A program made the translations under genes and the position numbers. A model generated the notes under the pieces. That model saw only the letters and a program-made list of their open reading frames with translations. It ran no database searches and was not told the origin of the DNA. This document shows, piece by piece, positions 4,136 to 25,143 of a DNA stretch of 64,000 bases (its first letter is position 1; each line of letters begins with the position of its first letter). The stretch lies in the IMG/VR virus record IMGVR_UViG_3300036770_003657, positions 186,001 through 250,000 of that record, one strand, 5' to 3'.

Positions 4136-4166
4136 TAGAGTTTTAATGTAAAATAATTGGAATAAT

Positions 4167-6916: not shown

Positions 6917-7124
6917 TACCTTGTCCCTTTGATTGATCTAAAAACTTAGCTAACTTATTATACACCCTACCAACTGCTTCCATTTCATTAGCCTTAAATG
7001 ATCCTCTACTATTCGTAATTTCAATAATTTGCTTTAGTGCATTTAGATCATTAATATTTAGGTCATCGTTTGATTGTTCTGGCTCACGCTCTGGTTCTTT
7101 TTCTGGAATAGATTTTGTAACCAT
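6909..7124 (-). CDS. Hypothetical protein
   Basis: GAGGAG RBS upstream; overlaps the next gene. Confidence 0.6.
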   Translation of the reverse strand: MVTKSIPEKEPEREPEQSNDDLNINDLNALKQIIEITNSRGSFKANEMEAVGRVYNKLAKFLDQSKGQGND

Positions 7125-7171
7125 ATTATCTCCTCAGTATATATCTATATATCTGGTTTAGGATAAAATGT

Positions 7172-7450
7172 TTACAATTCTGAATATCCTAATAAAAAGA
7201 AACTTAATTCTTTCTGTTCTTCAAAACCAATCTTAGTTGCGTAGGTAATAGTATTAGTGCTATCTAAAATTAAAGTTTGGCCAATGTAATATCTACCATT
7301 CAAATTTTGATATATCCAATCATCTACACTCATACTACGATTAGGATTGTAGCGATTTCTAGTGGTATAATGAAAATGGCGAGCCGGAAACCGCACTCGC
7401 CGCAAATCCAACAAATTTAAAGGATTTGGCTTGCCATGCTTAAGAGCCAT
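7172..7450 (-). CDS. Hypothetical protein
   Basis: TAATG coupling with the upstream VWA gene. Confidence 0.6.
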   Translation of the reverse strand: MALKHGKPNPLNLLDLRRVRFPARHFHYTTRNRYNPNRSMSVDDWIYQNLNGRYYIGQTLILDSTNTITYATKIGFEEQKELSFFLLGYSEL

Positions 7451-8634: not shown

Positions 8635-8656
8635 GATATCTCCTTAACAAAAGCAT

Positions 8657-8685
8657 ATTATAACAGGGGTCTGTGCCCCTGTCAA
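8657..8685 (-). promoter_or_regulatory. Consensus sigma70 early promoter (TTGACA-N17-TATAAT); spacer contains an ACAGGGG/CCCCTGT hairpin
   Basis: tgtcaa at 8680-8685 and attata at 8657-8662 on the + strand, 17-nt spacer. Confidence 0.85.
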
Positions 8686-8686
8686 T

Positions 8687-12688: not shown

Positions 12689-13360
12689 TTAGCCTAATGG
12701 GTTAGGATATGGATTTGGTCTAAGCCATTTTGCCTGACCCTTAGTAAAAGTGACCATACTGTTATGGAAGCTTACACTGCCAATGTCTCCAAAGTTTTTC
12801 ATAATGAAATCAGTTTCTGGAGTAATCATACCTTGCCAATGGTTTAGATTAACAATATCCACTAGCTTTTTACTAAACTCCATAAAGGTATGACCATGTA
12901 ATAGGCCATTGCCCCAATCCATATAGTAACTAGTATGAGTATCTTCTACCATATATACACCGCCTACACGAATTTTGGGCCATACAGTGAGCATGGTATC
13001 AATTTGATGTTTCATTTGATGACTACCATCATCTAAGAAAACGTCCACAGTGCCTAACTTGGGTAATACTTCAGTCCAAAAGTTGGGGTCACCTTGGTCA
13101 CCAATAAACAGTTCTACATTTTCAGCACGACGTTCCAATACTTTGGGATCAATGTCCATACCAATAATACGGGCCTTGTTACCAAAGTACTTACGCCACA
13201 TTTCTAAACTACCACCACCCTGTACACCTACTTCTACAAAGGTTAAGTCAGTATTTCTATAACCACTAAAGAAGTGTTCATACACTGGAAAGTATGGAAG
13301 GTACTTGTCACAGTGTAAGGTTAAATCATTAATAAAAATTTCCAGTAAACTCTTTTGCAT
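12689..13360 (-). CDS. Class I SAM-dependent methyltransferase (sugar O-methyltransferase-like)
   Basis: VEVGVQGGGS, GMDID, GDQ, LDDGSH and GGVYMVED; start M at 13360 is coupled to the queE stop. Confidence 0.82.
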   Translation of the reverse strand: MQKSLLEIFINDLTLHCDKYLPYFPVYEHFFSGYRNTDLTFVEVGVQGGGSLEMWRKYFGNKARIIGMDIDPKVLERRAENVELFIGDQGDPNFWTEVLPKLGTVDVFLDDGSHQMKHQIDTMLTVWPKIRVGGVYMVEDTHTSYYMDWGNGLLHGHTFMEFSKKLVDIVNLNHWQGMITPETDFIMKNFGDIGSVSFHNSMVTFTKGQAKWLRPNPYPNPLG

Positions 13361-14205
13361 TAGGTTCCCCATTCATTCTTGAATAATGGCACTTGTAGCC
13401 TATCACTATAGCGTACACCACATTGCATGGCCAGTTCAGCTACACGACGATTGTTCATACTATATACACTTTCCACACCACCTACTGGCATCAAATAGAC
13501 ATCACCATTAAATCCAGCTTTTCTATATTGTAGGCTAGCAACAAGAGCATCTTTAGCATCGTCCTCAGTGGCCACTACAAACTTCAAATATACATGACCG
13601 ACTTGTGCGTATTCACATACTACTTCAGGTAGGATAGCTTCTTCCCACTTTTCACCACTGCTAGGAAGTTTAGCACTTACACTAAAAGTAATTTCTCTGT
13701 CATCCCAGTCAGCCCATTCACCTAAATACTTTTTAAAATCAGCTGTAAGTTTTTGAGTACCATTAGTTTCAAAAGTTAATTGCTTCAAAGGCTGCATGAA
13801 CGCATGTTCTAATAGGTCAGGGTAACTGCGTTGCCAACCTAATAAAGGTTCACCACCAGTAATAACAAGATGTTCTCTAGTCCAGCGTTTAAATGGCAGT
13901 AAATCCATAATACTCTGTGCTATGCTGGCAGTGTCCAATACAGGACTAAAGTCCTTAAACCTTGGATCCCAACTAGCATAACTGTCACAGCCAGTATGTA
14001 CTAAGGGAAGATCCTTATAAGTTTTAAACTCTAGGATATGATCTGCGGCTTGGTCACGTTCTGTGCTGCGTAGACCACGTGCCATTCCAAATCCATCACA
14101 GGTAAAGTTACAGCCAAATGTGCGTAAGAACACACTGGGTACTCCCATAAACCTACCTTCACCCTGTAGGCTATAAAATAATTCACTTATCTTTAGTTTT
14201 GACAT
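13360..14205 (-). CDS. queE: 7-carboxy-7-deazaguanine synthase (radical SAM)
   Basis: ISELFYSLQGEG, FLRTFGCNFTC...CDS, ITGGEPL, FETNGT and LMP. Confidence 0.9.
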   Translation of the reverse strand: MSKLKISELFYSLQGEGRFMGVPSVFLRTFGCNFTCDGFGMARGLRSTERDQAADHILEFKTYKDLPLVHTGCDSYASWDPRFKDFSPVLDTASIAQSIMDLLPFKRWTREHLVITGGEPLLGWQRSYPDLLEHAFMQPLKQLTFETNGTQKLTADFKKYLGEWADWDDREITFSVSAKLPSSGEKWEEAILPEVVCEYAQVGHVYLKFVVATEDDAKDALVASLQYRKAGFNGDVYLMPVGGVESVYSMNNRRVAELAMQCGVRYSDRLQVPLFKNEWGT

Positions 14206-14533
14206 TTTGTTCTCTAAAAGTTTCTACATCTTTAATAGCAGATTGTAACACACTAGCATAGTTTAATGCTGCCTGTTTGGAAAGAATAATAGTGCTTTCT
14301 CTACTAATATATCCAGTGAACAGTAGTTTAAAAATATGACTCCATCTATCCTTACTCCAAAAGTTTGTTTTAGTATTAGTATAGATATAGACAGTAACGT
14401 CACTGTCATCTGCTTCAATGTCAATGGTATGGGTATGATCCAAGTCGCCACAGTGGCAAACAGCCTGATACATTTTGCTACTACCCCAGTCATTTACTCG
14501 TAATATACCCTGTGCTGGAGTTTCTGGTGTCAT
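14183..14533 (-). CDS. Hypothetical protein (CHC...H possible metal site)
   Basis: ORF in operon. Confidence 0.55.
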   Translation of the reverse strand: MTPETPAQGILRVNDWGSSKMYQAVCHCGDLDHTHTIDIEADDSDVTVYIYTNTKTNFWSKDRWSHIFKLLFTGYISRESTIILSKQAALNYASVLQSAIKDVETFREQNVKTKDK

Positions 14534-14814
14534 GTCTTCAAACTTTCCAATGTAGCGATTTTAGCAATACGTTCCCCAAAGTCTTGATCGTTGGTAATAA
14601 TATAGGTAGTAGTATGACTACGATCTATTTTACGATCGTAGTACCTAAACTCCACTACTCGACCACCAACAGCAGGGAATACTTTAAAATTAAGTATTGG
14701 ATCAGAACCAACACTTTCACTGTCAGCACTTAAAATCATACCTTCGCGAGCAAGTTTAGGCTCATTATTATAATCATTGACCCATTTGGCTAATTTGCGT
14801 TTAAGCCATCTCAT
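14530..14814 (-). CDS. Hypothetical protein
   Basis: ATGA-coupled ORF. Confidence 0.55.
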   Translation of the reverse strand: MRWLKRKLAKWVNDYNNEPKLAREGMILSADSESVGSDPILNFKVFPAVGGRVVEFRYYDRKIDRSHTTTYIITNDQDFGERIAKIATLESLKT

Positions 14815-14960
14815 TTTTGTGCCTGTGGTGTTTGTTTAGCGTTATGTTCAGCAAGTTTGGCTTGATATTGTGCTTCTGTAAGATTGTGCCAACCAATACA
14901 ATTTCCAGTGGGGCTACGTCCGCAGCCACAAGTACCTTTGGGTTTTTCATTTTGTGTCAT
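14811..14960 (-). CDS. Small CDGSH-type iron-sulfur-like protein
   Basis: CGCGRSPTGNCIGWH matches the 3Cys-1His CDGSH pattern. Confidence 0.65.
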   Translation of the reverse strand: MTQNEKPKGTCGCGRSPTGNCIGWHNLTEAQYQAKLAEHNAKQTPQAQK

Positions 14961-15174
14961 AGTAAAATTCCTTTTCTTTAAAATATGTTTCAAGTACCTC
15001 TAATTTATCCTTGTATTCTGCCATACAATGAATCTCTAGTTCCAAAGCCGCCATAATATCTGTATGTTCATGAATAGCTATTGGATTTGCCAACATTACT
15101 TCAACATTCATACGATGTTTATTAATGTTGCTATGAAAGTGTTGACTTAATGCGTTTAATAGTTCTGTTCTCAT
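14947..15174 (-). CDS. Hypothetical protein
   Basis: ATGA-coupled to folE. Confidence 0.55.
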   Translation of the reverse strand: MRTELLNALSQHFHSNINKHRMNVEVMLANPIAIHEHTDIMAALELEIHCMAEYKDKLEVLETYFKEKEFYYDTK

Positions 15175-15944
15175 CTTGGTGCAAAGTCCTGTTGTAGTTT
15201 AATATTATCAAAAAACTCTTTTTTAGTGCCATGGTCTACTTCAAAAGCACCTTTTAATACTGTAGTTTGTGTAAGACTACTATGTGCCATAATGCCTCTA
15301 TTCTCACAGCATCCATGAGTGGCCTGTATATAAACACCTACATTAGGACTACCTGTAGCCTTTTCAATTTCACGAGCAATTACATTACATAGTTCTTCCT
15401 GTAGAGTTCCTCTACGGGCACACCATTGTGCTATACGAGTATACTTACTTAGGCCTATTACACGACCATTAGGAATAATTCCTATATATGCTACGCCGTT
15501 TACAGGTTGATGATGATGACTACACATACTGCGTAATTCACTACGAACTACCAGCATACCCTTATAAGCATTTTCCCCCTCATTGGGAAAACTTGTAGCA
15601 TCTGGCCTTTCTTCATAACGACCACTCATAATCTCATAAACATACATCTTAGCCAGTCTACGTGCTGTACCTTGGCTGTTTGGATCATTGACTCGATCAA
15701 TTACTAAACTATCTAATACACCTTCGAACTTAGTGGTAAGTTCGTCAATGAGTAGTTCACGTTCATCTTCATTGATGTATTCACTAATATTATCACCAGC
15801 AAAGTACCTACCACCGCCTAGTTTAATACGATCTCTAATAACACGGCTTAAAGGCTTGCCAACAGGATCGTTAAAAATAGCACCCTCATATCCAGGATGA
15901 TATGGTGCTTCTTCTACAAGTTTATTATTCAATTCAATTTCCAT
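15171..15944 (-). CDS. folE: GTP cyclohydrolase I
   Basis: TARRLAKMY, SMCSHH, IGLSKYTR, LQEEL and HGCCENRG. Confidence 0.94.
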   Translation of the reverse strand: MEIELNNKLVEEAPYHPGYEGAIFNDPVGKPLSRVIRDRIKLGGGRYFAGDNISEYINEDERELLIDELTTKFEGVLDSLVIDRVNDPNSQGTARRLAKMYVYEIMSGRYEERPDATSFPNEGENAYKGMLVVRSELRSMCSHHHQPVNGVAYIGIIPNGRVIGLSKYTRIAQWCARRGTLQEELCNVIAREIEKATGSPNVGVYIQATHGCCENRGIMAHSSLTQTTVLKGAFEVDHGTKKEFFDNIKLQQDFAPR

Positions 15945-16444
15945 TATATAATTTTCTCCGCTACTACAGTAAAGCTATGATTTAAGTCTTTATCTCCATG
16001 TAGTATATTAACATATTTTTTATGTTGTAAATAGTCGTTAATTTGCTCAAAAGTTAGAGCATGGATATGTTTGGGATTATTCCAAGGACGCCAATATTGC
16101 TGGTCATAGTGTGGAAGATATAAAAATAGCACTCCATTCTTTTTTAATCGAGTGGTCCAATGATCTAGAGCAGTTACCCAGTTAGGTAAGTGTTCCAAAC
16201 AATGGCTACTAAAAATATAATCTACCTGACGGTCTGGTAAGTTATAGGCATCGTAACCATCATTATAATTTAAGTCTATGCCTTGAGCACCTGGAAAACA
16301 CCACTCTGGTCTATTACAACCAATATCAAATCCATCACCCTTACAAAAGCGTTGAGCAAAAGTCCAACAGAATTGACTACTAAATCCTTCAGCTTGAAAC
16401 TTAGGATAACGCCATGGGCCAAAATTAATAAATTCTATGCTCAC
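15944..16444 (-). CDS. Methyltransferase type 11-like protein
   Basis: DIGC, DYIFSSHCLEH and LKKNGVLFLYLP. Confidence 0.75.
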   Translation of the reverse strand: MSIEFINFGPWRYPKFQAEGFSSQFCWTFAQRFCKGDGFDIGCNRPEWCFPGAQGIDLNYNDGYDAYNLPDRQVDYIFSSHCLEHLPNWVTALDHWTTRLKKNGVLFLYLPHYDQQYWRPWNNPKHIHALTFEQINDYLQHKKYVNILHGDKDLNHSFTVVAEKII

Positions 16445-16845
16445 CAGTTTACACTCTCCACTATAGGTTGTTCTATTACTTTTTTATAGTTACCCTTTTC
16501 TGGGATAACGTGTCTTACACCGCCTCTGGGATCAGCCATATCACCTTTACGACGTGGTATCATATGTACGTGAGGATACATTACTGTTTGACCAGCAACC
16601 TCCCCAATGTTTTGACCAATGTTAAATCCGTCCCACTTTTCATTTTGGACTCCTTCATAGCCAAACTTGTATGCTCCTCTGTAGCATTCAAATAAAGCGT
16701 CCGGTGTTTGGCTGGTAGGCACAAATAGCAAATGCCCTTGGGTAACTGGGTACGCATCTCTGAAAACCCAGAAGTTACGGGTTCTGTATTCAATCTCTGT
16801 CCACGGTGCTGTTTTTTCATTAAGTGCCTTTTCTAAATCAGTCAT
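16441..16845 (-). CDS. HIT family nucleotide hydrolase
   Basis: DAYPVTQGHLLFVP and GFNIGQNIGEVAGQTVMYPHVHMIPRRKGD. Confidence 0.9.
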   Translation of the reverse strand: MTDLEKALNEKTAPWTEIEYRTRNFWVFRDAYPVTQGHLLFVPTSQTPDALFECYRGAYKFGYEGVQNEKWDGFNIGQNIGEVAGQTVMYPHVHMIPRRKGDMADPRGGVRHVIPEKGNYKKVIEQPIVESVNW

Positions 16846-17033
16846 GATAAATCCTTAAACATTTTTTTACGATTTGCTATACCTAAATGGTTGTCATATA
16901 TTTCCTTGGCACTTATCATCATGCAACTAGCCATCATAAGTAAGTCTTCTGTATTATCGCACATCATGACGGCTTTGTCAATAGGTTCGAACAGTTCTCT
17001 CATTCGTTTTAAATCTTGTTCTCTATCACGCAT
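16842..17033 (-). CDS. Hypothetical protein
   Basis: Likely start MRDREQ, overlapping the upstream stop. Confidence 0.5.
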   Translation of the reverse strand: MRDREQDLKRMRELFEPIDKAVMMCDNTEDLLMMASCMMISAKEIYDNHLGIANRKKMFKDLS

Positions 17034-17376
17034 CTTTAAGTTTCTTCCAAGTTCTATATTTTTCCAATTCCCGTATATAAGCATCATAGGCTTTTTTCAG
17101 TTTGGGAAATTCTTTTTCCAACTCTGGGTCACGCTCAGGTATCATTAATACTCTTTCAATAGTTTCCAATCTTTCTTCCAAGTCTCTACCGTTATGAACA
17201 ATTTTACCTTTAACTTCTAAACTAGCTGGGCTGTTATTAATTTTAATATGTTCGCCTAAACTATATCCACTGGCATTAGTAGTAGTATAAGTATAGCCAC
17301 TGGTGCTAGCACCGTTATTGGCAGCGATGTATACTTGATTAGGGTTGGAGTTTACGGGAAGCGAGGTATTGCTCAT
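17026..17376 (-). CDS. Hypothetical protein
   Basis: Low-complexity N-terminus and helical C-terminus. Confidence 0.55.
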   Translation of the reverse strand: MSNTSLPVNSNPNQVYIAANNGASTSGYTYTTTNASGYSLGEHIKINNSPASLEVKGKIVHNGRDLEERLETIERVLMIPERDPELEKEFPKLKKAYDAYIRELEKYRTWKKLKDA

Positions 17377-17824
17377 TAGGTATCCATTTATTCTTTACCA
17401 GGAATCCCCATTCTTTACGCTGTGGGCCTGGCATAAACAGCGTCCAACAAGTAATGTCTGGATCAAGTTCTATACGGTGATAACTACTGGCCTTACTAAA
17501 ACGAAAATGCCCTGCACCACGCCAATGTGCTATTTCGTTTACCTTACGACCTTGCTCATCAAACTGTGGGATCCATTCCCAATAGCCGCCTCTAAGTATA
17601 AAAGTAGCATAGGGCCAAGGATGATCGTGTACATCATCTGGATCACTCTTGAGGAATTTGTGTAGGAATATGTTAAATGGAAACCATTTACGATCTTTTA
17701 GGAAAACATAATAGCGTTCCAAATAAGGTTCCTCACTAACACGATCCAGTATGATACGCTTGCGTCCCATACGATCAAGTAAGTTTAAGAATTTATCTTT
17801 TAGGCGTTGGGTTATCATAGTCAT
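17339..17824 (-). CDS. Cupin-fold (dioxygenase-like) protein
   Basis: HKF..SD.DD.HDHPW, GGYWEW, YHRIEL and WTLF cupin-type motifs. Confidence 0.65.
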   Translation of the reverse strand: MTMITQRLKDKFLNLLDRMGRKRIILDRVSEEPYLERYYVFLKDRKWFPFNIFLHKFLKSDPDDVHDHPWPYATFILRGGYWEWIPQFDEQGRKVNEIAHWRGAGHFRFSKASSYHRIELDPDITCWTLFMPGPQRKEWGFLVKNKWIPNEQYLASRKLQP

Positions 17825-18299
17825 CCTTGACCAAGGTATAAACGGTTGATAAATTTTCTAATGCTTTCTTAATAGCAGGATACTTTTTGGCCATATCCTG
17901 CATCTTATACCAAGCAGGCCAAGTGTCAACAAATTCCTCTTGTTGTGGCCAATGTATCTTAGTATAATCTGTACCTGTACCTAAAGCACCAATCTGGGCT
18001 GTATTTAAAGTAGCCCACTGACTAGTATCTAAAGGCTGTATTGTTATTAGATCATTAAATTGAGCACCTTCAATTGGTGCATTATATGTATAAGTTGGTG
18101 TAGGCCCATTTAAATCAATACCACTCAAAGTAATACTACTCAAATCAATTGCTTGTATTTGATCTGTGGTCAATGCAGGTATTTGCGTATTCATATTAAT
18201 CCAACTATTATCGCTACCAGCACTAATAGTTAGAGTTTCTGTAGCCGTAAAATCACTTAAGGTTATTGTATAAGGGCTGTGCTGAGAAGAATCGTTCAC
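17793..18299 (-). CDS. Hypothetical protein
   Basis: T/S/I-rich ORF in operon. Confidence 0.55.
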   Translation of the reverse strand: MNDSSQHSPYTITLSDFTATETLTISAGSDNSWINMNTQIPALTTDQIQAIDLSSITLSGIDLNGPTPTYTYNAPIEGAQFNDLITIQPLDTSQWATLNTAQIGALGTGTDYTKIHWPQQEEFVDTWPAWYKMQDMAKKYPAIKKALENLSTVYTLVKDDYDNPTPKR

Positions 18300-19311
18300 T
18301 TAGTTGTTCCTTTTGTTGTTGTAATAGTTTCAACCTAGTACTGTAATTATCCATATGTTGTATAATAGTATAACATAATTTTTGACGATGTGTCAAATAA
18401 TACTCATAATTTTCAGTACATACTGATGGATATTTAAATGTATCAAAATACATTTCAGTATAACTTAGGCGATCTGGAACCAATGGGATAGCATCTAACA
18501 CCACACCCTCATAACAACTTATACCCAATGTTTCCTGTAGGTTAGCACTGAATACCATCTTAGCCTCACCTAATAATGTATGGTATTCGTGTTTAGTAAG
18601 ATTCAATTCTTGGCATACTACAAATTCGTATTGAGGCAAGTGTGTAGCAAGGTCTTTGAATATCTCTACCTGCTTCTCTGGTGTTATACGATGTGGGAAA
18701 AGAATTAGGTCACGCTTGGTTAATCCTTTATATGGAAGAAGCATAGTTTCCATATATTCCATTGGCCACCCAGATCGAATAACTTTGTTTTCATCGTAAT
18801 CAACTACATTATGTAATAAATTATGATCAAACATATTGATATGAAACTGTGTGGCAAAATAATTATGATCTATAGCATGAAAGAATGCTTTTTCGCTATG
18901 TCTCACCCACGGGGCATTACCAATAAGCCTGCCTAAAAAGTCTTGGGGATCATATGATCCAGCATGCCATAATGCGTGAATTCTTACAGGAATCTGTAAT
19001 AGTTCACTCATATATTTTAAGTTTATGATACCTGGGTGCCAAGCATCAGTAAAAATAAAATGGTCGCCAGGTGTGATGCGTCCCTCGCAAAACAATCTGC
19101 TAATTGTAGCGACTTGGTGAGACTTGTAGATATTAGTGCCGCCAAAATTAAGAAAGGCACCAGGAGTAGTGGCTTTAGGAATATCCTCTGGACCAACAAT
19201 AACTTCAACTTCATGTCCTAAACTCCGTAATTTTCTTGGTAGAGCACTTTTCCACTCGATGGTATATCGAGTGGAAACGCTTTCCAGATCAACCAGAAAT
19301 ATTTTGCTCAT
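18253..19311 (-). CDS. Glycosyltransferase (GT-B, GT4-like)
   Basis: FPHRITPEKQ and ETLGISCYE (ExxGxxxxE) motifs plus LVPDRLSY.E; likely start MSKIF at 19311. Confidence 0.8.
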   Translation of the reverse strand: MSKIFLVDLESVSTRYTIEWKSALPRKLRSLGHEVEVIVGPEDIPKATTPGAFLNFGGTNIYKSHQVATISRLFCEGRITPGDHFIFTDAWHPGIINLKYMSELLQIPVRIHALWHAGSYDPQDFLGRLIGNAPWVRHSEKAFFHAIDHNYFATQFHINMFDHNLLHNVVDYDENKVIRSGWPMEYMETMLLPYKGLTKRDLILFPHRITPEKQVEIFKDLATHLPQYEFVVCQELNLTKHEYHTLLGEAKMVFSANLQETLGISCYEGVVLDAIPLVPDRLSYTEMYFDTFKYPSVCTENYEYYLTHRQKLCYTIIQHMDNYSTRLKLLQQQKEQLSERFFSAQPLYNNLK

Positions 19312-19531
19312 TACGCTTTTTTCCAGTACGAGTCTGGTTATTGTATGGTCGCTTGGGCCGTTTACTGGCCAAGTACGCACTATACACTGGGCTGTTCTTA
19401 CGATAAAGTTCAGCCTCATTAAAGGGTGCTAGTTCCCAACGACACCAGTCATGATATGCTTCGAGGTCTTCGAAAATTTTAGTAACCTCTGGCTTCATAA
19501 CCAGATACTTGTTAAGCCAACTTGCTGCCAT
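19289..19531 (-). CDS. Hypothetical protein
   Basis: AAGGAAG RBS; ORF in operon. Confidence 0.6.
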   Translation of the reverse strand: MAASWLNKYLVMKPEVTKIFEDLEAYHDWCRWELAPFNEAELYRKNSPVYSAYLASKRPKRPYNNQTRTGKKRNEQNISG

Positions 19532-19564
19532 TTTTACTTCCTTTGTTTATGTTGATTAAAAAAA

Positions 19565-19942
19565 TTAAGGTTTATATTCAATAATGCCGTCTGATTCACC
19601 ATCTTCTGAAACAGTTATTTCATAGTATCTCTCTCCGTACTTGGGTAATAAATGATTTTCTAAAATATCAGTGGCAATCATTTCACAACTTTTATGATTC
19701 ATATTGCCACCTTGGATGAACTCAGCCAGTGCCCATTTTACTAAAAAGAATTCTAACTCTCTATCTAAATGGTTAACACTGATCTTTACTTCTACTTTGA
19801 ACATATGTCTATGTTCATTTTCTAAAAACTTAATTCTGGGATCAATACTGCCAGCATTAGGATAATAGTGAAAACCTTCAAACTCGGTTCTCACTCTAAT
19901 ATATGTCATCTTGCTAGGCCTAACATCTTGTTTAATAATCAT
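19565..19942 (-). CDS. dpdL: QueD-paralogous T-fold protein, probable CDG decarboxylase (DpdL-like)
   Basis: FEGFH, LENEHRHMF (LxxxHRHxF instead of QueD CxxxHGH), SCEMIA and VSEDGE; sits in a dpdA/folE/queE cluster. The motif assignment is recalled from the literature and needs checking. Confidence 0.65.
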   Translation of the reverse strand: MIIKQDVRPSKMTYIRVRTEFEGFHYYPNAGSIDPRIKFLENEHRHMFKVEVKISVNHLDRELEFFLVKWALAEFIQGGNMNHKSCEMIATDILENHLLPKYGERYYEITVSEDGESDGIIEYKP

Positions 19943-20136
19943 CGTAAACCTTGTATTAGTAGTTCAATTTCTTGTTGGTTTAAAAATAGGTTGTAGGTAC
20001 TAGTATTAGTTACAAGACCTTCCTTAACTGTTTCTTGTGCAAATTCGATATTATATAGAGTTTTAGGATTATCACAAGCACGTTTGGTCATTCTAATCCT
20101 ATATTCTGGCATATTCTTAATTAATATTTGGCTCAT
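19939..20136 (-). CDS. Hypothetical protein
   Basis: ATGA-coupled ORF. Confidence 0.5.
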   Translation of the reverse strand: MSQILIKNMPEYRIRMTKRACDNPKTLYNIEFAQETVKEGLVTNTSTYNLFLNQQEIELLIQGLR

Positions 20137-20636
20137 ACTGGTGTATCTCCTTCGTATTCTTTCCAGTCTGTATATACCTCACGACTCATAAGATCGTGTA
20201 AGTAATGACACCATACTCCAGGGTTAGTGTCACCCCAAGTATTGTCGTCGATTTTTAATACTGCGTTATAGTTGTATAGTTTAATATATGGAATTTTTAC
20301 ACTGATCATAGGAATGAATCTATTACTCTCTGTAAAGCTCATTTCGTGAATTTCATCAGCATATTTTACATCAAAGTCAAGAGTGACCCAATAACCAATA
20401 TCTAATAAACCATTGATCATTTTACTCCAAGCACGCCAATCTTCAAGACTAACGGGTGTAAAACTTTGACTAGTGCCTAAATAGACGTGATCAAGGTTAT
20501 CTATTTTGCTAACTATTTCATCTACAGGTTTGACACCAACTACAAATAATGTTCTTTGGCCTTTCATTGGAGTATTTTCAACTTCAGTGCCAATAAAATA
20601 GTCTACTTGTTGTCTACCTTCTGTTCCTATGGCCAT
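20133..20636 (-). CDS. Hypothetical protein in the dpd cluster
   Basis: 167-aa globular-looking ORF (GTEVENT...TNPGVWC). Confidence 0.6.
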   Translation of the reverse strand: MAIGTEGRQQVDYFIGTEVENTPMKGQRTLFVVGVKPVDEIVSKIDNLDHVYLGTSQSFTPVSLEDWRAWSKMINGLLDIGYWVTLDFDVKYADEIHEMSFTESNRFIPMISVKIPYIKLYNYNAVLKIDDNTWGDTNPGVWCHYLHDLMSREVYTDWKEYEGDTPV

Positions 20637-21505
20637 ACTATATAACCTCTGCCGTAATTTGTTGGTCTATCAGCACCATCTTTGAAAGCCTGCTGCCACT
20701 CTGTAGTCCTATTATACGCACGAGTCCAGAACCTGTCAACATTTAATTGACCTTCCTTTATCCATTTTACAGCATATTCCATACTTTGGTGGAATGTTTT
20801 ACTACGTGGGCTTGGACGTACAGTTGTTACGCAATTCCAAAGTAAATGATCTTCAGTTTGTTTACTAGTAGCCTTACCAACAGCATTAACCAATATGCCG
20901 TTTGTAGCTATGGGATAAAGATCCTCTCCTTTAAAATCCATAATCACATCGTATTCACCATCATAGGTACTTTTATGATCCTCACCAAACAGATCAGTAT
21001 GATGATTACCCAATACATTAATATCAAAATTAAAATTACTAATCTTTAGTGTAGTATATGCCACATAACTTAAAAATCCAGTACCATTAATCAGTAGTCT
21101 CCCACCTTCTTTACGTTTGAGATGATAGTAATATTGGTTTACGCTGTTTACTCCACAGGCCACAGGTTCAATGATATAGCGTGGATGTGCTTCTGGCACC
21201 TGTACATACTCTCCACCTCTTACATTATAGAAGTCAGCATAAGCAGGTTCACCTCTGGTTGCTACAAGGTCACCAACTTGTACATCATATACAAACTTAC
21301 CTACTTCTATGACTTCACCTAAACCTTCGTGTCCCTGCATACCTAATGGTAATGGACCAAAGTTGCCCTGCATCATATCAATATCACTACGACATACGCC
21401 GGTCATAATGCTACGCACACGAATACCTGTACTTGGAGTAGGTTCTAATGCTATACGTGTTTCAAAAAACTCACCGTTGCCGGTAGTGGCTAATAGTTTA
21501 TTCAT
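20627..21505 (-). CDS. Zinc-dependent (MDR) alcohol/sugar dehydrogenase
   Basis: GVCRSD and GHEGLGEV catalytic-Zn motifs, EPVAC, Rossmann GTGFL. Confidence 0.85.
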   Translation of the reverse strand: MNKLLATTGNGEFFETRIALEPTPSTGIRVRSIMTGVCRSDIDMMQGNFGPLPLGMQGHEGLGEVIEVGKFVYDVQVGDLVATRGEPAYADFYNVRGGEYVQVPEAHPRYIIEPVACGVNSVNQYYYHLKRKEGGRLLINGTGFLSYVAYTTLKISNFNFDINVLGNHHTDLFGEDHKSTYDGEYDVIMDFKGEDLYPIATNGILVNAVGKATSKQTEDHLLWNCVTTVRPSPRSKTFHQSMEYAVKWIKEGQLNVDRFWTRAYNRTTEWQQAFKDGADRPTNYGRGYIVWP

Positions 21506-22395
21506 AATTTCTCGATTTTACTGTGTATCCAACTGTCCATAAAATATTGATTATCCCAAAACTCTTGGTTATTGATATTGTTTAGTGCTGTTTCAATCAT
21601 TGTTCTATAGGCACTTTCTGGACAAAGACCTAATGGAACAAAATGTTTATGTCCTGTAAATAATTGAAAGTGGATACCAATGTCAGCAGGGTTTAGGCTA
21701 CGCCAATCTGCTGTCAGTGTCCACATAGTTTCAGCACCAAGGAATCCTAGTCTACAATAGTCATCTACATTGTACACACCATCTGGATTGACCTTTCCAT
21801 AACTGGTATTTGTGAGGTCTGCCAAAGTCCAGCGTTGTTTTACATCTTTGCGGGTACGATCTGCGTCGTAATATTGTGGGTCCATAACGCACCAAATACT
21901 TAATAAGTGTGGCATAAGGTCACGGCTAACTCCACCCCAAGCAAGTTCACGGTTAGTAAACCAACTACCTGGACTTGGCACACGATCATCATTGATCCAA
22001 TTTACGTCAACTATAACACTGGCACTGGCCAAATGTTTTATTTCATCAATATTATCTCTATATTGATTATTCTTGACCATCATAATTCGTGTATTAGGGT
22101 GGCTTTCTACAAGTAAATCCCAAGCTTCACTGGTGGGTAATCCTGGTTTCTCAATAAACAATATACTAGTATGATCAACTACTTCAAGTGCTATAGTACC
22201 GTGTGTAAAGTTAGGTGTACAAATATGTGCTGTATCAAACTTATCATTGTCCTCTAGTGCTTGATTTAGACTAGTGTAATCAGCATGGCATAATGGGTTA
22301 GTATCTACAGTGACCACAGTATGTCCCATACTTTCCAATACATCCTTGTATAGTTGACCTATACCCATACCAATGACCAGACTAGTTTTGCTCAT
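21502..22395 (-). CDS. Gfo/Idh/MocA family oxidoreductase
   Basis: IGMGIG, ICTPNFTH, IEKP and GGVSRDLMPH. Confidence 0.85.
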   Translation of the reverse strand: MSKTSLVIGMGIGQLYKDVLESMGHTVVTVDTNPLCHADYTSLNQALEDNDKFDTAHICTPNFTHGTIALEVVDHTSILFIEKPGLPTSEAWDLLVESHPNTRIMMVKNNQYRDNIDEIKHLASASVIVDVNWINDDRVPSPGSWFTNRELAWGGVSRDLMPHLLSIWCVMDPQYYDADRTRKDVKQRWTLADLTNTSYGKVNPDGVYNVDDYCRLGFLGAETMWTLTADWRSLNPADIGIHFQLFTGHKHFVPLGLCPESAYRTMIETALNNINNQEFWDNQYFMDSWIHSKIEKL

Positions 22396-22636
22396 TTTTA
22401 CTGTCCTCGTATTTCATAAACATACGTGTCACAGGTTCCATTTCTTTAGCAAAATCATTAGGCATATGTATAGTCATCATTTCCAAATGATAATCAGTAG
22501 GGTAGTGCTTTAATAAATTCCTAGCACGTTCACGTACAACCTTTGGAACCTTTGGAGTCATAAGTGGACTAGTAAGTTCCATTAGAAACTTTCTAGTTTG
22601 AACAATATTACGATAGCGTTCGTCAGGCAGTGTCAT
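22382..22636 (-). CDS. BPSL0761-like small protein
   Basis: MTLPDER...FL.EL...VRERARNLLKHYP pattern. Confidence 0.55.
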   Translation of the reverse strand: MTLPDERYRNIVQTRKFLMELTSPLMTPKVPKVVRERARNLLKHYPTDYHLEMMTIHMPNDFAKEMEPVTRMFMKYEDSKNEQN

Positions 22637-24173
22637 CTTCTACTTCCATTTCTAAGGTTTCCAAGTTATCAATTTCGTCATCACTAAATTCACCTTCTTC
22701 TAATTGTACAGGATTATCCTCTACAAAGTCAAAGAATTTATTGAATAATGGTTTAAATGCTCTTGGACCACTATCCCCTCTAGTGCCAATAACTTGATCA
22801 TAAAATTTGCCAAAGTCATCTATAATTTCTAAAGCTACTTGTTTATTACTAGTAGAAAATACAGCATTCACTATATCTCTAAAATATGTTCTATCTATTT
22901 TTTCTTTAACTAACATAGCAGGACATATTCCAGCATCATATTGGCGGTTAGCTTCTTGTACAGCATTAATATGATGCCAAATATTGTGACACATCATTAT
23001 ACCGTAGCTAAAACTATCCCAACTTGTTTTATTACTTTGTCCAAACTTATTCAAGTCACCTGGGCCGTATACACATATGTCTCCAACTTGTATTTTATCC
23101 ATAGGTGGACTATTTTCAAATACTGGTAATATGCCATCCTGTACTACTGCGTCCTTATAGAACCTTTGATCATTTTTATATTTTTTGTCATCCAAACCAG
23201 CACTCATTCTATAGGTCCATTTTTTACGATCAATGGTTTCAGTTTGATAATAAATTTGACCATTAGCAGTGGCTAGGAAAGGACTGGCACAATCAAAAGT
23301 AATAGTAAAATTTGGATTATGATATTTTCTTACTGCTCTCTGTAGGTCAGTTAATAATACAGCCCATTCTAATTTACTGGTTCCAAGAAAGTGCATATAG
23401 TCTTGATAGCCTTTTTCTAAAAGACCATCAAACCTTAATGCTACAAGTCTCTTTAACACAAGGTGGATATCACACATATTTTGTCCACCCATAGCCCAAC
23501 CATTAAAATGTTCATTAGGATATTGTTTTGGGTCACTGTATTTTTTCATTTCCTGATACCAACGTTCTGCTTCGGTATGGTCTTCACCTTGTAGAACGTT
23601 CAGGAATTTACAATTACCATTACGATTACGTATAAAGTATTCGTTATTAATATGTGTGCCGGCTACAGCATCATCAAAGTCTTCAATTTTTGTTTTTTTA
23701 ACTGCTTCTTTAAAATTGCCAATCCAACTAGGAATATCTAAAATCATTCCATAGTCCATCAGCGTATCCATCCAAGTTAATACTTGATAACGCTTTTTAG
23801 CCGCTTTAGGACAATTTGGGTCTTTCCAATTGCCTTCCCATTTGCCCTTACCTATTTGGAAACCACCGCTATCACCAAGTACCCAACTTGTCTTACGATC
23901 ACGATTGCGAAACATATCCTCACGCCAACTTACTTTAGTCAAGTCTAAATTAGCGTGTCCAGCACTGTACAAACACCATTGATAATAAAACTCACCCTTT
24001 ACCGGGTCTAAAAAGTTCAAACTTTCCATACCATTACCAAAAGCTTTTGGTATACGAGCAGGATCTACATAGTTAAAATAACGCTGTTTACCTATAAAAG
24101 TAGCATAAAAGGTGCTAGTAGCTGGCAGAAACTTTGCATAATCTAGTTGGGTACTGGTTAAGTCTTTATTCAT
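22623..24173 (-). CDS. dpdA: TGT-family transglycosylase, DpdA-like (deazaguanine insertion into DNA)
   Basis: LGDSGGFQ, ILDIP, VLQG, GWAMGG, HFLG and TFDCASP TGT-fold motifs; no C-terminal Zn-binding CxCxxC of tRNA TGTs; next to clamp/PolB and folE/queE. Confidence 0.8.
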   Translation of the reverse strand: MNKDLTSTQLDYAKFLPATSTFYATFIGKQRYFNYVDPARIPKAFGNGMESLNFLDPVKGEFYYQWCLYSAGHANLDLTKVSWREDMFRNRDRKTSWVLGDSGGFQIGKGKWEGNWKDPNCPKAAKKRYQVLTWMDTLMDYGMILDIPSWIGNFKEAVKKTKIEDFDDAVAGTHINNEYFIRNRNGNCKFLNVLQGEDHTEAERWYQEMKKYSDPKQYPNEHFNGWAMGGQNMCDIHLVLKRLVALRFDGLLEKGYQDYMHFLGTSKLEWAVLLTDLQRAVRKYHNPNFTITFDCASPFLATANGQIYYQTETIDRKKWTYRMSAGLDDKKYKNDQRFYKDAVVQDGILPVFENSPPMDKIQVGDICVYGPGDLNKFGQSNKTSWDSFSYGIMMCHNIWHHINAVQEANRQYDAGICPAMLVKEKIDRTYFRDIVNAVFSTSNKQVALEIIDDFGKFYDQVIGTRGDSGPRAFKPLFNKFFDFVEDNPVQLEEGEFSDDEIDNLETLEMEVEDDTA

Positions 24174-24366
24174 TAACTTCTTTCAAATAGTCTATATGCT
24201 GATTAATCAGCAATATTTTAATGCTAGTAGGATCAACGGCATTATTTCTTTCTATACTTAAATGAACCAGTACATTTTGTTTGTGGAGAGTCACTAGTGT
24301 ATCATTAATTAATGATACACAGTCCTTCAACATTTTTACTTGTTCTTTAATTTGAGGATCCATCAT
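24166..24366 (-). CDS. Hypothetical protein
   Basis: ATGA-coupled ORF. Confidence 0.5.
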   Translation of the reverse strand: MMDPQIKEQVKMLKDCVSLINDTLVTLHKQNVLVHLSIERNNAVDPTSIKILLINQHIDYLKEVNE

Positions 24367-25097
24367 TTGCTCTGTGCTGGTAAGATATAGTTGTATTCGG
24401 CAATACCACTATCTACAGTAATCATCATAGCACCTTGGTCACTGATCTTCATAGTCATGTCACCGTCTAAGTTTAGAATACTAAGAACTTGTTGTACTGG
24501 CCAACTCCATTCTTGCTTAAGTTTACCTGTGACCTTAGGTTGAAAAACAAAACTACCTGCGTGAGTACTAGCATCTCCAAAGCTTACTACAAGGTCTTTA
24601 TTCTCCACTTTAACTTGGAAAATAGTTTCTTCATTATGAACTTGTGCCTGTAGCTTGAGCCGTTGTGTACTACTTAGGCTAGGTGTAAATTCAATATCCC
24701 AACTTGATCCTTTAAACTTTACACTTTTTAGTTTTTCATTAATGATTTGTGTACTCATAAACCTATAGTCATTAACATAGTCCCTATCTTCATTTTCAAA
24801 GTGTAAGCCTGTAGGAATATCTTCACCATTGCGATTACTGACCACTACGTCAATACTAGCGTTTTCTTTATACTCTGGATTTTTCAATAGTAAATTAAGT
24901 TTATCCAAGTTAGGCATACCAAATATACCTTGAAAATCACCTACTGGGTTATGTGTTTTAGCTGTTAAAATTACGCTACGATCTTCTGCCATACTTTCAA
25001 TAGTAGTATCTGTACCTTCACCTGTAATTTTTACTAAGGGTAAAAATCCTAAACTATGAGTATGTGTTACAATATCTGTTAAAATGTCTTTAATCAT
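24363..25097 (-). CDS. DNA polymerase sliding clamp (gp45/PCNA-like)
   Basis: 244-aa beta-rich protein immediately downstream of PolB, ending in the clamp-like ...GIAEYNYILPA. Confidence 0.7.
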   Translation of the reverse strand: MIKDILTDIVTHTHSLGFLPLVKITGEGTDTTIESMAEDRSVILTAKTHNPVGDFQGIFGMPNLDKLNLLLKNPEYKENASIDVVVSNRNGEDIPTGLHFENEDRDYVNDYRFMSTQIINEKLKSVKFKGSSWDIEFTPSLSSTQRLKLQAQVHNEETIFQVKVENKDLVVSFGDASTHAGSFVFQPKVTGKLKQEWSWPVQQVLSILNLDGDMTMKISDQGAMMITVDSGIAEYNYILPAQSK

Positions 25098-25114: not shown

Positions 25115-25143
25115 ATTATATTTAGAAAAATGTTATTTGTCAA
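25115..25143 (-). promoter_or_regulatory. Consensus sigma70 promoter (TTGACA-N17-TATAAT) upstream of the clamp/dpd operon
   Basis: tgtcaa at 25138-25143 and attata at 25115-25120. Confidence 0.85.

Follow-up and report, generated by a model that had tools for sequence, protein, structure and literature searches.

A predicted 7-deazaguanine DNA-modification cluster of a giant freshwater phage with a conserved, predicted glycosyltransferase as a core partner

Introduction

Does the gene block that follows the DNA polymerase of a giant freshwater phage merely replace guanine with 7-deazaguanine, or could it also place a sugar on the modified base? We addressed this question for a 64,000-nucleotide stretch (positions 186,001 to 250,000 of IMG/VR record IMGVR_UViG_3300036770_003657, a contig of 399,796 bp), which is called the window below. 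A preliminary description, made from the sequence alone, had placed an extended 7-deazaguanine cluster at 13360-24173, downstream of polB and the clamp. It listed dpdA, a Gfo/Idh/MocA oxidoreductase, a Zn-dehydrogenase, an unknown gene, a dpdL-like gene, a GT-B glycosyltransferase (GT), a cupin, HIT, a methyltransferase, folE, CDGSH, queE and a second methyltransferase, without queC, queF or gat-queC in the window. It was inferred there that the two oxidoreductases could make an unusual (NDP-)sugar or cyclitol, which the GT would attach to the deazaguanine, possibly with further O-methylation, and that the cluster was a candidate for a new hypermodified base.

Results

The cluster was found as described. 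About 24 tightly packed genes, all on the minus strand and separated by gaps of 33 nt or less or overlapping, run from 24173 down to 12689, and their assignments are collected in Table 1. The Methyltransf_24 gene at the end of the block lies just outside the range given in the preliminary description. Several members were recognised directly by profile searches, namely the Gfo/Idh/MocA protein, the Zn-dependent medium-chain dehydrogenase/reductase (MDR), the HIT protein, both methyltransferases, FolE, QueE and the cupin. The DpdA-like, GT and DpdL-like assignments were confirmed only by deeper work. The DpdA-like protein gave no Pfam, PHROG, NCBIfam or PDB sequence hit and the GT gave no Pfam hit; the fold of both is predicted from structural models. 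The CDGSH assignment could not be confirmed, since the 60-aa ORF has a suggestive motif by eye but no Pfam hit. The absence of queC, queF and gat-queC was confirmed by tblastn, and QueD was also absent, although these results cover only the 64 kb of the window.

Table 1 Features of the cluster and of its two upstream neighbours, with the observations on which each assignment rests
Position	Strand	Assignment	Observations
25140..27809	-	Family-B DNA polymerase (upstream anchor of the cluster)	49% identical to PA5oct DNA polymerase and syntenic with it
24363..25097	-	Sliding-clamp-like protein (context)	35% identical to PA5oct EST35_0314 and 32% to the Phosso 'DNA polymerase III sliding clamp beta'
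22623..24173	-	DpdA-like DNA-guanine transglycosylase, predicted TGT fold, divergent 516-aa clade	DSGGFQ and FDCAS motifs; D101, S102, G104 and D294 invariant in 60 diverse relatives; AlphaFold model with pLDDT 92, top 50 PDB hits all tRNA-guanine transglycosylases (TGTs); hhalign 96% to the X1 'queuine tRNA-ribosyltransferase' and 93.5% to an Amme-1 protein that passes the Pfam TGT threshold
22382..22636	-	84-aa conserved ORF of unknown function	Homologues at the same position in 16 loci; no family hit
21502..22395	-	Gfo/Idh/MocA NAD(P) oxidoreductase, sugar/glycoside dehydrogenase type	PF01408 at 26.1 bits (cut-off 24); E82, K83 and P84 (EKP) invariant; best PDB profile hit DgpA, followed by inositol 2-dehydrogenase, glucuronide-3-dehydrogenase and WbpB
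20627..21505	-	Zn-dependent MDR, paired with the Gfo gene	ADH_N 1.8e-10; C38, H59 and E60 (GHE) conserved
20133..20636	-	167-aa conserved protein of unknown function (u167)	No Pfam, PHROG or PDB hit; at least 7,894 clusters of unnamed homologues; a 36%-identical homologue directly upstream of the DpdA of ACP17
19565..19942	-	DpdL-like T-fold protein (proposed CDG decarboxylase)	LENEHRHMF matches the published LxxxHRHxF signature; hits phiST CGPG_00067 (DpdL) at 30% identity, E 7e-8; present in 46 of 57 loci
19289..19531	-	80-aa conserved ORF just upstream of the GT	Homologues in 21 loci at the same position
18253..19311	-	Predicted GT-B (GT4-like, probably retaining) glycosyltransferase, 352 aa from M37 of the ORF (probably the real start)	Homologues 350-367 aa long; R-x3-EK and EX7E motifs conserved; model with pLDDT 83, matching GT4/GT5 GT-B enzymes, best PDB hits glycogen synthase, BshA, MshA, PimA and WaaG; best viral structural match the ACP17 GT, TM 0.84-0.86
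17793..18299	-	168-aa Ser/Thr-rich protein with an ALTTAQ repeat	PF20080 at 27.1 bits; conserved after the GT in 11 loci
17339..17824	-	Cysteine-dioxygenase (CDO)-like cupin with a conserved His triad	PHROG 4786 at 1.4e-36; H66, H68 and H116 invariant; Atlas neighbours belong to the CDO_I family
17026..17376	-	116-aa protein, Ser/Thr-rich at the N-terminus with a charged helical tail	Conserved in 8 loci and in PA5oct at 37% identity
16441..16845	-	HIT-family nucleotide hydrolase/transferase	PF01230 at 1.7e-7; HVHMI histidine motif
15944..16444	-	Class I SAM methyltransferase	Methyltransf_23 at 1.7e-9
15171..15944	-	GTP cyclohydrolase I (FolE)	PF01227 at 2.2e-38; PHROG 1e-44
14811..14993	-	60-aa Cys-rich ORF (CDGSH not confirmed)	CxCx2Sx4CxGxH motif by eye; no Pfam hit; conserved in 3 loci
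13360..14205	-	QueE-like radical-SAM CDG synthase	PHROG 2076 at 4.3e-48; NCBIfam QueE models at 2.4e-14, below their cut-offs
12689..13372	-	Methyltransf_24 (CmcI/rhamnosyl-O-methyltransferase-like) methyltransferase	PF13578 at 1.4e-6; RMNT_CmcI at 0.0043, below its cut-off

We next asked whether the GT and the oxidoreductases belong to the cluster or only happen to lie in it, a co-occurrence check that had been proposed with the preliminary description. Starting from the Gfo protein, 71 of 72 testable loci had the DpdA-like gene upstream, 70 of 70 had the MDR adjacent, and 49 of 50 had the GT and DpdL downstream. In IMG/VR, 9 of 9 near-clade loci have the GT, and most far-clade loci have a 21-28% identical homologue at the same position. 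These loci come from related phages, so that the synteny partly reflects common descent, and only the roughly six cultured lineages count as independent. In these six unrelated lineages, namely the PA5oct group, ACP17, Phosso, X1/BUDD, BUCT-ZZ01 and BCSR5, the GT is adjacent to or within 4 kb of DpdL, DpdA or QueE. From the two hit lists (23 GT records and 28 DpdL records among 50,697), we calculated that about 0.01 shared records would be expected by chance, while about 17 shared records in the six lineages were counted. Both the GT and the DpdA-like protein have thousands of metagenomic relatives.

The GT is thus a conserved core member of DpdL-type clusters and not an extension special to this window, and only the Gfo-MDR, cupin, HIT and methyltransferase set is clade-specific. 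The GT occurs without Gfo and MDR in PA5oct, ACP17, X1, BUCT-ZZ01, one of the compared loci (L013) and the far clade. Other lineages carry epimerase/dehydratase, DegT aminotransferase and nucleotidyltransferase genes at or near the GT instead. The ORFs flanking the GT in 13 loci included Epimerase (six), GDP_Man_Dehyd (five), CTP_transf_like (five), DegT (four) and Glycos_transf_1 (two). In related loci classical NDP-sugar tailoring genes directly follow the GT, as in one locus with the order GT, DUF4422, DegT, epimerase and another with GT, epimerase/dehydratase, DegT.

A cultured counterpart is the uncharacterised cluster EST35_0316-0322 of Pseudomonas phage PA5oct (Wroclawvirus), which has the same gene order of polB, clamp, DpdA-like gene (32% identical), GT (44%), DpdL (31%), QueE and RNaseH. 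PA5oct lacks Gfo, MDR, u167, the cupin, HIT, the methyltransferases and FolE at this locus. Its DNA is reported to be G-modified and to resist several G-containing restriction sites, but we found no published chemistry of this modification in the literature that could be searched.

Discussion

Our preferred reading, which we consider about as likely as not, is that this is a DpdL-type 7-deazaguanine DNA-modification operon of a roughly 400-kb freshwater jumbo phage related to PA5oct, with glycosylation as a built-in step and lineage-specific sugar tailoring. The analysis itself establishes the gene identities, the tight co-directional packing, the synteny with PA5oct, the association of the GT with DpdL, DpdA and QueE, the neighbouring tailoring genes and the constant Gfo-MDR pairing, whereas every enzymatic step and the glycosylated base itself are inferred. 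In this view, FolE and QueE would make 7-carboxy-7-deazaguanine (CDG) from GTP, as inferred from the known functions of the families, and QueD would have to come from elsewhere in the genome or from the host. The DpdL-like protein would then convert CDG to 7-deazaguanine, an activity that was proposed by Hutinet et al. 2023 (PMC10516641) but has never been shown biochemically, and the DpdA-like enzyme would exchange guanine in DNA for this base, which is inferred from the fold, the motifs and the gene context. The GT would transfer a sugar from an NDP-sugar onto the deazaguanine, most likely after the base is in DNA, with the pyrrole C7/C8, the N2 amine, or the carboxylate if CDG is the inserted base, as candidate acceptors. 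Finally, the Gfo-MDR pair, with the CDO-like cupin, the HIT protein and the two methyltransferases, would tailor that sugar, for which one possibility is 3-oxidation followed by re-reduction (an epimerisation) and O-methylation; the nearest solved relatives of the Gfo protein are sugar and glycoside dehydrogenases. The expected result would be a bulky, lineage-variable glyco-deazaguanine that blocks restriction enzymes. If so, these phages, including culturable ones such as PA5oct, may carry a sugar-bearing purine in DNA, a kind of base of which we found no report.

The interpretation offered in the preliminary description is therefore only partly supported. Its gene calls, apart from CDGSH, and the missing QueC and QueF are right and the co-occurrence holds, but the pathway it assumed needs QueD, which is not in the window, a cyclitol is not specifically supported, and nothing shows that the sugar ends up on the base. 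Chemical data do not exist for any GT-bearing phage, 7-deazaguanine and CDG offer no hydroxyl, which is the usual acceptor of DNA glycosyltransferases, and no retaining GT4-type enzyme is known to us that forms a C-, N- or acyl-glycoside on a nucleobase. In addition, Gfo and MDR lie between DpdA and DpdL and not next to the GT, and the cupin looks like a thiol dioxygenase rather than a sugar isomerase.

These points leave room for the possibility, which we consider unlikely, that the DNA carries plain 7-deazaguanine (dDG) or dCDG, and that the GT and the sugar or redox genes serve another target, such as virion or early proteins or the host envelope, and sit here only because this is a variable early-gene region. 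GT4-type enzymes usually act on sugars, lipids, small molecules or proteins, and the Ser/Thr-rich small proteins that are conserved next to the GT could be protein acceptors. Cellulophaga phage phiST, which has DpdA3 and DpdL and whose DNA carries plain dDG (PMC10516641), shows that these two yield dDG without such a GT. However, the GT stays within 4 kb of DpdL, DpdA and QueE in six otherwise unrelated phage backbones, including T4-like ACP17 and BUCT-ZZ01, far beyond the chance expectation given above, and no homologue of the Ser/Thr-rich ORFs was detected in the locus examined for ACP17.

The phiST system is among the closest known systems. Both clusters have FolE and QueE plus a QueD-like DpdL with the LxxxHRHxF signature, no QueC, and a divergent TGT-like transglycosylase next to the replication genes. 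The phiST transglycosylase, however, has 259 aa and is only weakly related (hhalign 67%, E 5e-5, over 82 columns), the GT of the window found no match in phiST or other Cellulophaga phages in the phage collection, phiST CGPG_00066 is unrelated to u167, and no Gfo/MDR, cupin or HIT gene is annotated in the phiST cluster.

In the same study, dpdA plus dpdL of ACP17 and phiST gave no dDG in E. coli, and the authors suspected missing enzymes (PMC10516641); we count this result, like the plain dDG of phiST, also in favour of the preferred reading. The GT and u167 are the conserved unknowns next to these genes in ACP17, so that the GT might instead act inside the biosynthetic pathway on a free base or nucleotide intermediate, either by making a transient glycosyl or ribosyl-like adduct that DpdL or DpdA needs or as a non-catalytic partner, and the final base would carry no sugar. 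Phosphoribosyltransferase and IMPDH/GMP-reductase genes recur in related clusters, which hints at nucleotide-level chemistry. We regard this reading as somewhat less likely still, because phiST makes dDG with no hit to this GT in the phage collection, and because the conserved donor-binding motifs R-x3-EK and EX7E and the variable NDP-sugar tailoring cassettes next to the GT fit a retained, diversifying sugar better than a transient one.

Glycosylation of DNA bases in phages is known from the T4 alpha- and beta-glucosyltransferases on 5-hmC and from glycosylated 5-hydroxycytosine (PMC13326640). As in those systems, a predicted GT-B fold enzyme is encoded here next to base-modification genes, the sugars would vary by lineage, and the presumed role is to counter restriction. 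All of those enzymes act on a hydroxyl of a modified pyrimidine, while here the base would be a purine analogue without a hydroxyl, and the GT model showed no special similarity to T4-type DNA glucosyltransferases, with a cyanophage 'DNA alpha-GT' ranking only 37th at a TM of about 0.5. By analogy only, a sugar on a 7-deazaguanine derivative already inside a nucleic acid occurs in eukaryotic tRNA as mannosyl-Q and galactosyl-Q, and the mannosyltransferase is a GT4-type enzyme. There the acceptor is the cyclopentenediol of queuosine in RNA, and no QueA/QueG-type genes are present here.

A missing acceptor could also be supplied if, in this clade, the Gfo/MDR pair and perhaps the cupin acted on the 7-substituent of the base, for example by reducing the CDG carboxyl through an aldehyde to 7-hydroxymethyl-7-deazaguanine, which the GT would then glycosylate in the way T4 glucosylates 5-hmC. 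Zn-MDR enzymes interconvert aldehydes and alcohols, and the position of the pair between DpdA and DpdL would fit. We consider this the least likely of the readings, because the GT is present without Gfo and MDR in the phages and loci named above, so the acceptor cannot depend on them, no carboxylate-activating enzyme was identified, and DpdL, the proposed decarboxylase, is also present. Moreover, the nearest solved relatives of the Gfo protein oxidise sugar ring hydroxyls. The best of them is DgpA (7xr9, E 9e-10), a C-glycoside 3''-oxidoreductase, and WbpB, of the UDP-sugar 3-dehydrogenase type, is a further one (0.025). The similarity is low and covers mainly the N-terminal and central part, and the partner here is a Zn-MDR rather than DgpB/C or an aminotransferase, but the EKP motif is shared.

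The gene block and its predicted proteins

The block comprises about 24 consecutive minus-strand ORFs separated by at most 33 nt, many of them overlapping, and it lies directly downstream of a family-B DNA polymerase and a clamp-like gene (the coordinates are collected in the table). Most of the gene assignments in the preliminary description were confirmed by HMM libraries, namely Gfo/Idh/MocA (PF01408, 26.1 bits against a cut-off of 24), Zn-MDR (ADH_N, 1.8e-10, 41.4 bits), HIT (1.7e-7), a SAM methyltransferase (1.7e-9), FolE (2.2e-38), QueE (PHROG, 4.3e-48), and a cysteine-dioxygenase-like cupin (PHROG, 1.4e-36), and the observation of a deazaguanine-type cluster with a glycosyltransferase and an oxidoreductase pair held. 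A Methyltransf_24/CmcI-like methyltransferase lies just outside the range originally described. By contrast, the 60-aa ORF that had been called CDGSH could not be confirmed, because its Cys3-His motif, recognized by eye, is one residue short of CxCx2(S/T)x3PxCDG(S/A/T)H, lacks the P and the D-G-S residues, and has no match to Pfam, zf-CDGSH included. A tblastn search with phage QueC, QueF, Gat, YhhQ, and QueD found nothing in the window, and no CxxxHGH motif exists there. Thus, QueD, which the proposed pathway needs, must be encoded elsewhere in the 399,796-bp contig or be supplied by the host.

Table. Features of the window and of related loci, with positions and strand
Feature	Sequence	Position	Strand
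Block of about 24 consecutive ORFs	window	12689-24173	-
Family-B DNA polymerase	window	25140-27809	
Clamp-like gene	window	24363-25097	
u167, 167-aa protein of unknown function	window	20133-20636	-
DpdL signature LENEHRHMF	window	19799-19825	
Small Ser/Thr-rich protein	window	17793-18299	-
Small Ser/Thr-rich protein, also conserved in PA5oct	window	17026-17376	-
Methyltransf_24/CmcI-like methyltransferase	window	12689-13372	-
DUF2201 metallopeptidase/VWA-like protein and MoxR-like AAA ATPase	window	7450-9778	-
Flavin-dependent thymidylate synthase ThyX	window	5327-6001	-
Low-GC island	window	1-5372	+
Asp/Asn beta-hydroxylase-like 2OG oxygenase	window	1181-2728	+
Methyltransf_24 methyltransferase of the island	window	2725-3459	+
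Radical-SAM protein of the island	window	4167-5372	+
Homologue of u167	L061 (ACP17)	7278-7646	
Phosphoribosyltransferase and IMPDH/GMP-reductase-family genes	L043; L055; L220 (BUCT-ZZ01)	15495-16568; 13762-14856; 2453-2914	
preQ0/preQ1-type cluster with a DpdA-like protein	L060 (Vibrio phage 2.275.O)	7905-14931	
Gfo, MDR, Cupin_2, and radical-SAM/Fer4_12 genes	L204	7995-11291	

Three of the proteins have no family hits. Sequence and profile searches of the DpdA-like protein, the glycosyltransferase (GT), and DpdL against the PDB found nothing useful, and structure prediction was needed. The 516-aa DpdA-like protein has no Pfam (PF01702 included), PHROG, NCBIfam, or PDB sequence match, but it carries DSGGFQ and FDCAS motifs, and its AlphaFold model (pLDDT 92, pTM 0.91) has the predicted TGT-type (beta/alpha)8 barrel, with only tRNA-guanine transglycosylases among the top 50 PDB matches (best E 6.7e-6, TM by target about 0.5). 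A profile search found 1,189 50%-identity clusters of relatives, and in a 60-sequence alignment reaching down to 25% identity, D101, S102, G104, P148, N192, H261, G264, and D294 are invariant, although the equivalence of the two aspartates to TGT D102 and D280 rests on motif resemblance alone. The link to Pfam TGT is transitive only: hhalign connects the family to the 'queuine tRNA-ribosyltransferase' of Xanthomonas phage X1 (96%), to a BUCT-ZZ01 protein (92%), with the motifs aligned in both, and to a protein of P. putida phage Amme-1 (93.5%), which itself scores 33 bits against the Pfam cut-off of 26.3. The canonical Zn-binding CxCxxC...H subdomain is missing, as there is no CxCxxC in the sequence and no invariant Cys in the 60-sequence alignment, and the C-terminal part differs from canonical TGT. 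Comparison with the DpdA3 subfamily gave only a weak match, in which hhalign of one of our profiles (A4) against phiST CGPG_00065 gave 66.8% (E 5.3e-5) over 82 columns, and a second profile (A1) against the ACP17 DpdA gave 43.8%, while the window protein is twice as long. We therefore treat it as a DpdA-like transglycosylase of a separate clade near DpdA3. A member of the same clade (about 28-33% identical) in Vibrio phage 2.275.O (locus L060) sits in a full preQ0/preQ1-type cluster with QueF, a YhhQ-like transporter, QueC, a Gat-like amidohydrolase, and FolE, but without a DpdL or GT homologue, indicating that this transglycosylase clade is not restricted to DpdL-type pathways.

The 125-aa DpdL-like protein carries LENEHRHMF, the only motif in the window that matches the published DpdL signature LxxxHRHxF, which stands in place of the QueD motif CxxxHGH (PMC10516641). 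It hits phiST DpdL (CGPG_00067) by tblastn at 30% identity over 90% of the query (E 7e-8), and the gene context agrees, with DpdA, FolE, and QueE present and QueC absent, at least within the 64-kb window of a 400-kb genome.

The GT probably starts at M37 of its ORF, which gives 352 aa, in line with the 350-367 aa of its homologues. Its model (pLDDT 83, pTM 0.82) is a predicted GT-B fold with two Rossmann domains and has 131 PDB matches at E of 0.001 or less, the closest being the GT4/GT5 enzymes glycogen synthase, BshA, MshA, PimA, and WaaG (TM 0.57-0.66). The donor-binding motifs R-x3-EK and EX7E are conserved: R208, E212, and K213 are invariant and E268 is nearly invariant, with QETLGISCYEG in the near clade and D-x7-E in the far clade. 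No Pfam hit was obtained at E of 0.01 or less, Glycos_transf_1 included, but the ACP17 homologue is labelled as having a GT family 1 domain in UniProt/BFVD. We considered whether the protein could be a T4-type DNA glucosyltransferase (AGT/BGT) and rejected this, because there is no specific similarity: none of these enzymes appears among the top 50 PDB hits, and a cyanophage 'DNA alpha-GT' ranks only 37th in BFVD.

The Gfo/Idh/MocA protein has the N-terminal NAD(P) Rossmann domain with the EKP motif, in which GxGxxG and E82-K83-P84 are invariant, and 54 PDB sequences match at E of 1 or less, most of them Gfo/Idh/MocA-type oxidoreductases. Its nearest solved relatives are DgpA (9e-10), the C-glycoside 3''-oxidoreductase, then inositol 2-dehydrogenase, glucuronide-3-dehydrogenase, and WbpB. 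In the GroES-like domain of the Zn-MDR, C38, H59, and E60 (the catalytic Zn ligands, with the His-Glu of GHE) are invariant, although Pfam did not detect the cofactor domain. The cupin profile found nothing in the PDB. For u167, an Atlas search gave only low-score, unrelated neighbours, a profile search of the PDB gave only spurious designed-repeat hits, a homologue search returned only unnamed proteins without Pfam domains (at least 7,894 clusters), and hhalign against the Phosso 'glycosylase', PA5oct gp0320, and phiST CGPG_00066 was negative. However, a homologue of 36% identity stands directly upstream of the DpdA of the unrelated phage ACP17, and u167 is probably a further uncharacterised core component of the pathway.

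Distribution of the cluster and of the glycosyltransferase

No cultured phage is close to the window at the DNA level, but gene order and protein identities (30-52%) match the Pseudomonas jumbo phage PA5oct, in the order polB, clamp, DpdA-like, GT, DpdL, QueE, RNaseH, ATPase. Near-identical sequence occurs in lake, freshwater, and subsurface metagenomes of at least 15 studies. The families are very large, as the DpdA-like, GT, and u167 families each return at least about 8,000 90%-identity clusters.

The comparative analysis showed that the GT is not peculiar to this window. Among 50,697 phage records, 23 hold a GT homologue and 28 a DpdL homologue, and by our count about 17 hold both, always within 4 kb of each other, whereas we calculate about 0.01 expected by chance. 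These records fall into six unrelated lineages. In the PA5oct group, DpdA-like, GT, and DpdL are contiguous; in Acidovorax ACP17 the order is QueD, FolE, u167 homologue, DpdA, GT, DpdL, QueE; in Sinorhizobium Phosso it is polB, clamp, DpdL, GT, FolE, QueE; in Xanthomonas X1/BUDD it is FolE, GT, 'queuine tRNA-ribosyltransferase', DpdL, QueE; in Synechococcus BUCT-ZZ01 it is QueE, XGPRT, QueD, FolE, DpdA-like, DpdL, GT; and the sixth lineage is Burkholderia BCSR5. DpdL occurs without this GT in Cellulophaga phiST, phi13:1, and phi19:2, whose DNA was shown to contain plain dDG, and in a few other phages. In IMG/VR, all 9 near-clade loci with enough sequence have the GT, and most far-clade loci have a 21-28% identical homologue at the same position. 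The IMG/VR loci are related phages, however, and only the cultured lineages count as independent.

Genes around the glycosyltransferase

The preliminary description had named co-occurrence of the GT and the oxidoreductases with dpdA as a test of its interpretation, and this was examined by starting from the Gfo protein in 77 newly fetched IMG/VR loci. The DpdA-like gene was upstream in 71 of 72 testable loci, the MDR was adjacent in 70 of 70, the GT and DpdL were downstream in 49 of 50, and the cupin was present in 34 of 50. The single exception (locus L204), with no DpdA, DpdL, or GT within 8 kb, has Gfo, MDR, a Cupin_2 protein, and a radical-SAM/Fer4_12 protein in a row, which hints that Gfo, MDR, and the cupin form a portable unit. 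Gfo/MDR, the cupin, HIT, and the methyltransferases are confined to the near clade, where DpdA is roughly 55% or more identical, with some mosaic exceptions. In eleven loci (L164-L169, L171, L175, L215, L218, and L219), DpdL is 77-80% identical to that of the window, while the adjacent DpdA-like protein is only 39-55% identical and Gfo about 50%, suggesting that modules are exchanged between divergent backbones.

Lineages lacking this set carry other genes around the GT. Among 72 unassigned ORFs from 13 loci, Pfam found Epimerase (6), RmlD (6), GDP_Man_Dehyd (5), CTP_transf_like (5), DegT aminotransferase (4), and Glycos_transf_1 (2), as well as PTPS (QueD; 8), phosphoribosyltransferase (7), and IMPDH/GMP reductase (3). 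Two of these loci illustrate the arrangement, with GT, DUF4422, DegT, epimerase in L053 and GT, epimerase/dehydratase, DegT in L020. This pattern of a fixed GT with interchangeable NDP-sugar or glycoside tailoring cassettes is what one expects if the GT installs a sugar that diversifies between lineages. The phosphoribosyltransferase and IMPDH/GMP-reductase-family genes that recur inside related DpdA-DpdL-GT clusters, to which the XGPRT of BUCT-ZZ01 can be added, could salvage the guanine released by DpdA back into GTP, or they could do nucleotide-level 7-deazapurine chemistry like that of toyocamycin and tubercidin biosynthesis.

Proposed pathway

What our analysis establishes are the predicted folds, the motifs, and the conserved gene neighbourhood, and the reactions are inferences of two kinds. 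From the protein families we infer that FolE, QueD, and QueE make CDG, that DpdL converts it to 7-deazaguanine, an activity that was proposed (PMC10516641) but has never been demonstrated for any member, and that the DpdA-like enzyme exchanges this base for G in DNA. From gene context alone we infer that the GT adds a sugar to this base, and that in this clade Gfo and MDR (by oxidation and re-reduction at a ring carbon, that is, an epimerisation), the cupin, HIT, and one or two O-methyltransferases tailor it. The suggestion that the two oxidoreductases could make an unusual sugar for attachment to the deazaguanine is partly supported. We consider a glycosylated deazaguanine in virion DNA about as likely as not. 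It could explain two open observations: PA5oct DNA resists restriction at G-containing sites yet is sensed by END nucleases, with its chemistry unsolved (PMC12191111), and dpdA plus dpdL from ACP17 and phiST did not give dDG in E. coli, for which the authors suspected missing enzymes (PMC10516641).

Nevertheless, this reading has weak points. Neither DG nor CDG has a hydroxyl, so the linkage would have to be a C-, N-, or acyl-glycoside, which no GT4-type enzyme is known to us to form, the GT shows no special similarity to T4-type DNA glucosyltransferases, and the cupin looks like a thiol dioxygenase. Moreover, two small Ser/Thr-rich proteins, one with an ALTTAQ repeat, flank the cupin just downstream of the GT and are conserved in related loci, and they could be alternative, protein acceptors of glycosylation. 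It therefore remains possible, though unlikely in our view, that the DNA carries plain dDG and the GT serves another target. Somewhat less likely still is that the GT acts on a pathway intermediate and no sugar is retained. We give the least weight to the idea that Gfo and MDR remodel the 7-substituent, for example, to a hydroxymethyl acceptor, which is weakened because the GT occurs widely without them, and for the same reason we rejected the view that the acceptor of the GT is created by Gfo, MDR, or the cupin.

The closest characterised system is the phiST DpdA3/DpdL pathway to dDG, and the closest by sequence is the uncharacterised PA5oct cluster, whereas T4 5-hmC glucosylation, the recently described glycosylated 5-hydroxycytosine (PMC13326640), and glycosylated queuosine in eukaryotic tRNA are analogies. 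DNA glycosylation is known on modified pyrimidines, and all 7-deazaguanine DNA modifications described so far are small (PMC10516641). Full-text literature searches found no report of a sugar-bearing deazaguanine in DNA, or of any GT or hexose linked to deazaguanine in DNA. In the broadest form of our reading, which we hold only tentatively and rate slightly below even, a large and environmentally abundant group of phages, including freshwater jumbo phages and the cultured PA5oct group, ACP17, X1/BUDD, BUCT-ZZ01, BCSR5, and Phosso, would replace guanine with a glycosylated 7-deazaguanine. This would be the first sugar-bearing purine in DNA known to us, and its linkage might be an unprecedented C- or N-glycoside. 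The sugar would vary between lineages through swappable tailoring cassettes, which in this window would be a Gfo/MDR 3-oxidoreductase pair, a cupin, a HIT protein, and O-methyltransferases. Such a base would add a new chemical class of natural DNA base, and possibly a new glycosyltransferase reaction on a nucleobase without a hydroxyl. Given the size of the families, the modification would matter for metagenomic sequencing bias, for phage-host arms races, and for the design of therapy phages of the PA5oct type, and the prediction applies to several phages that are in culture.

Other genes of the window

A flavin-dependent thymidylate synthase, ThyX (Thy1, 1.7e-43), is encoded outside the block. 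No dCMP or dUMP hydroxymethylase-type enzyme turned up among the ORFs scanned (79-9778 and 12689-24173, leaving out 28-64 kb), so a hydroxymethyl-pyrimidine acceptor for the GT is not evident there. On the opposite strand lies a low-GC island (25-28% against about 37% elsewhere), which encodes an Asp/Asn beta-hydroxylase-like 2OG oxygenase, a Methyltransf_24 methyltransferase, and a radical-SAM protein, and may be a second, unrelated modification module or a recent acquisition. Finally, a DUF2201 metallopeptidase/VWA-like protein stands next to a MoxR-like AAA ATPase, which is 52% identical to one conserved in PA5oct.
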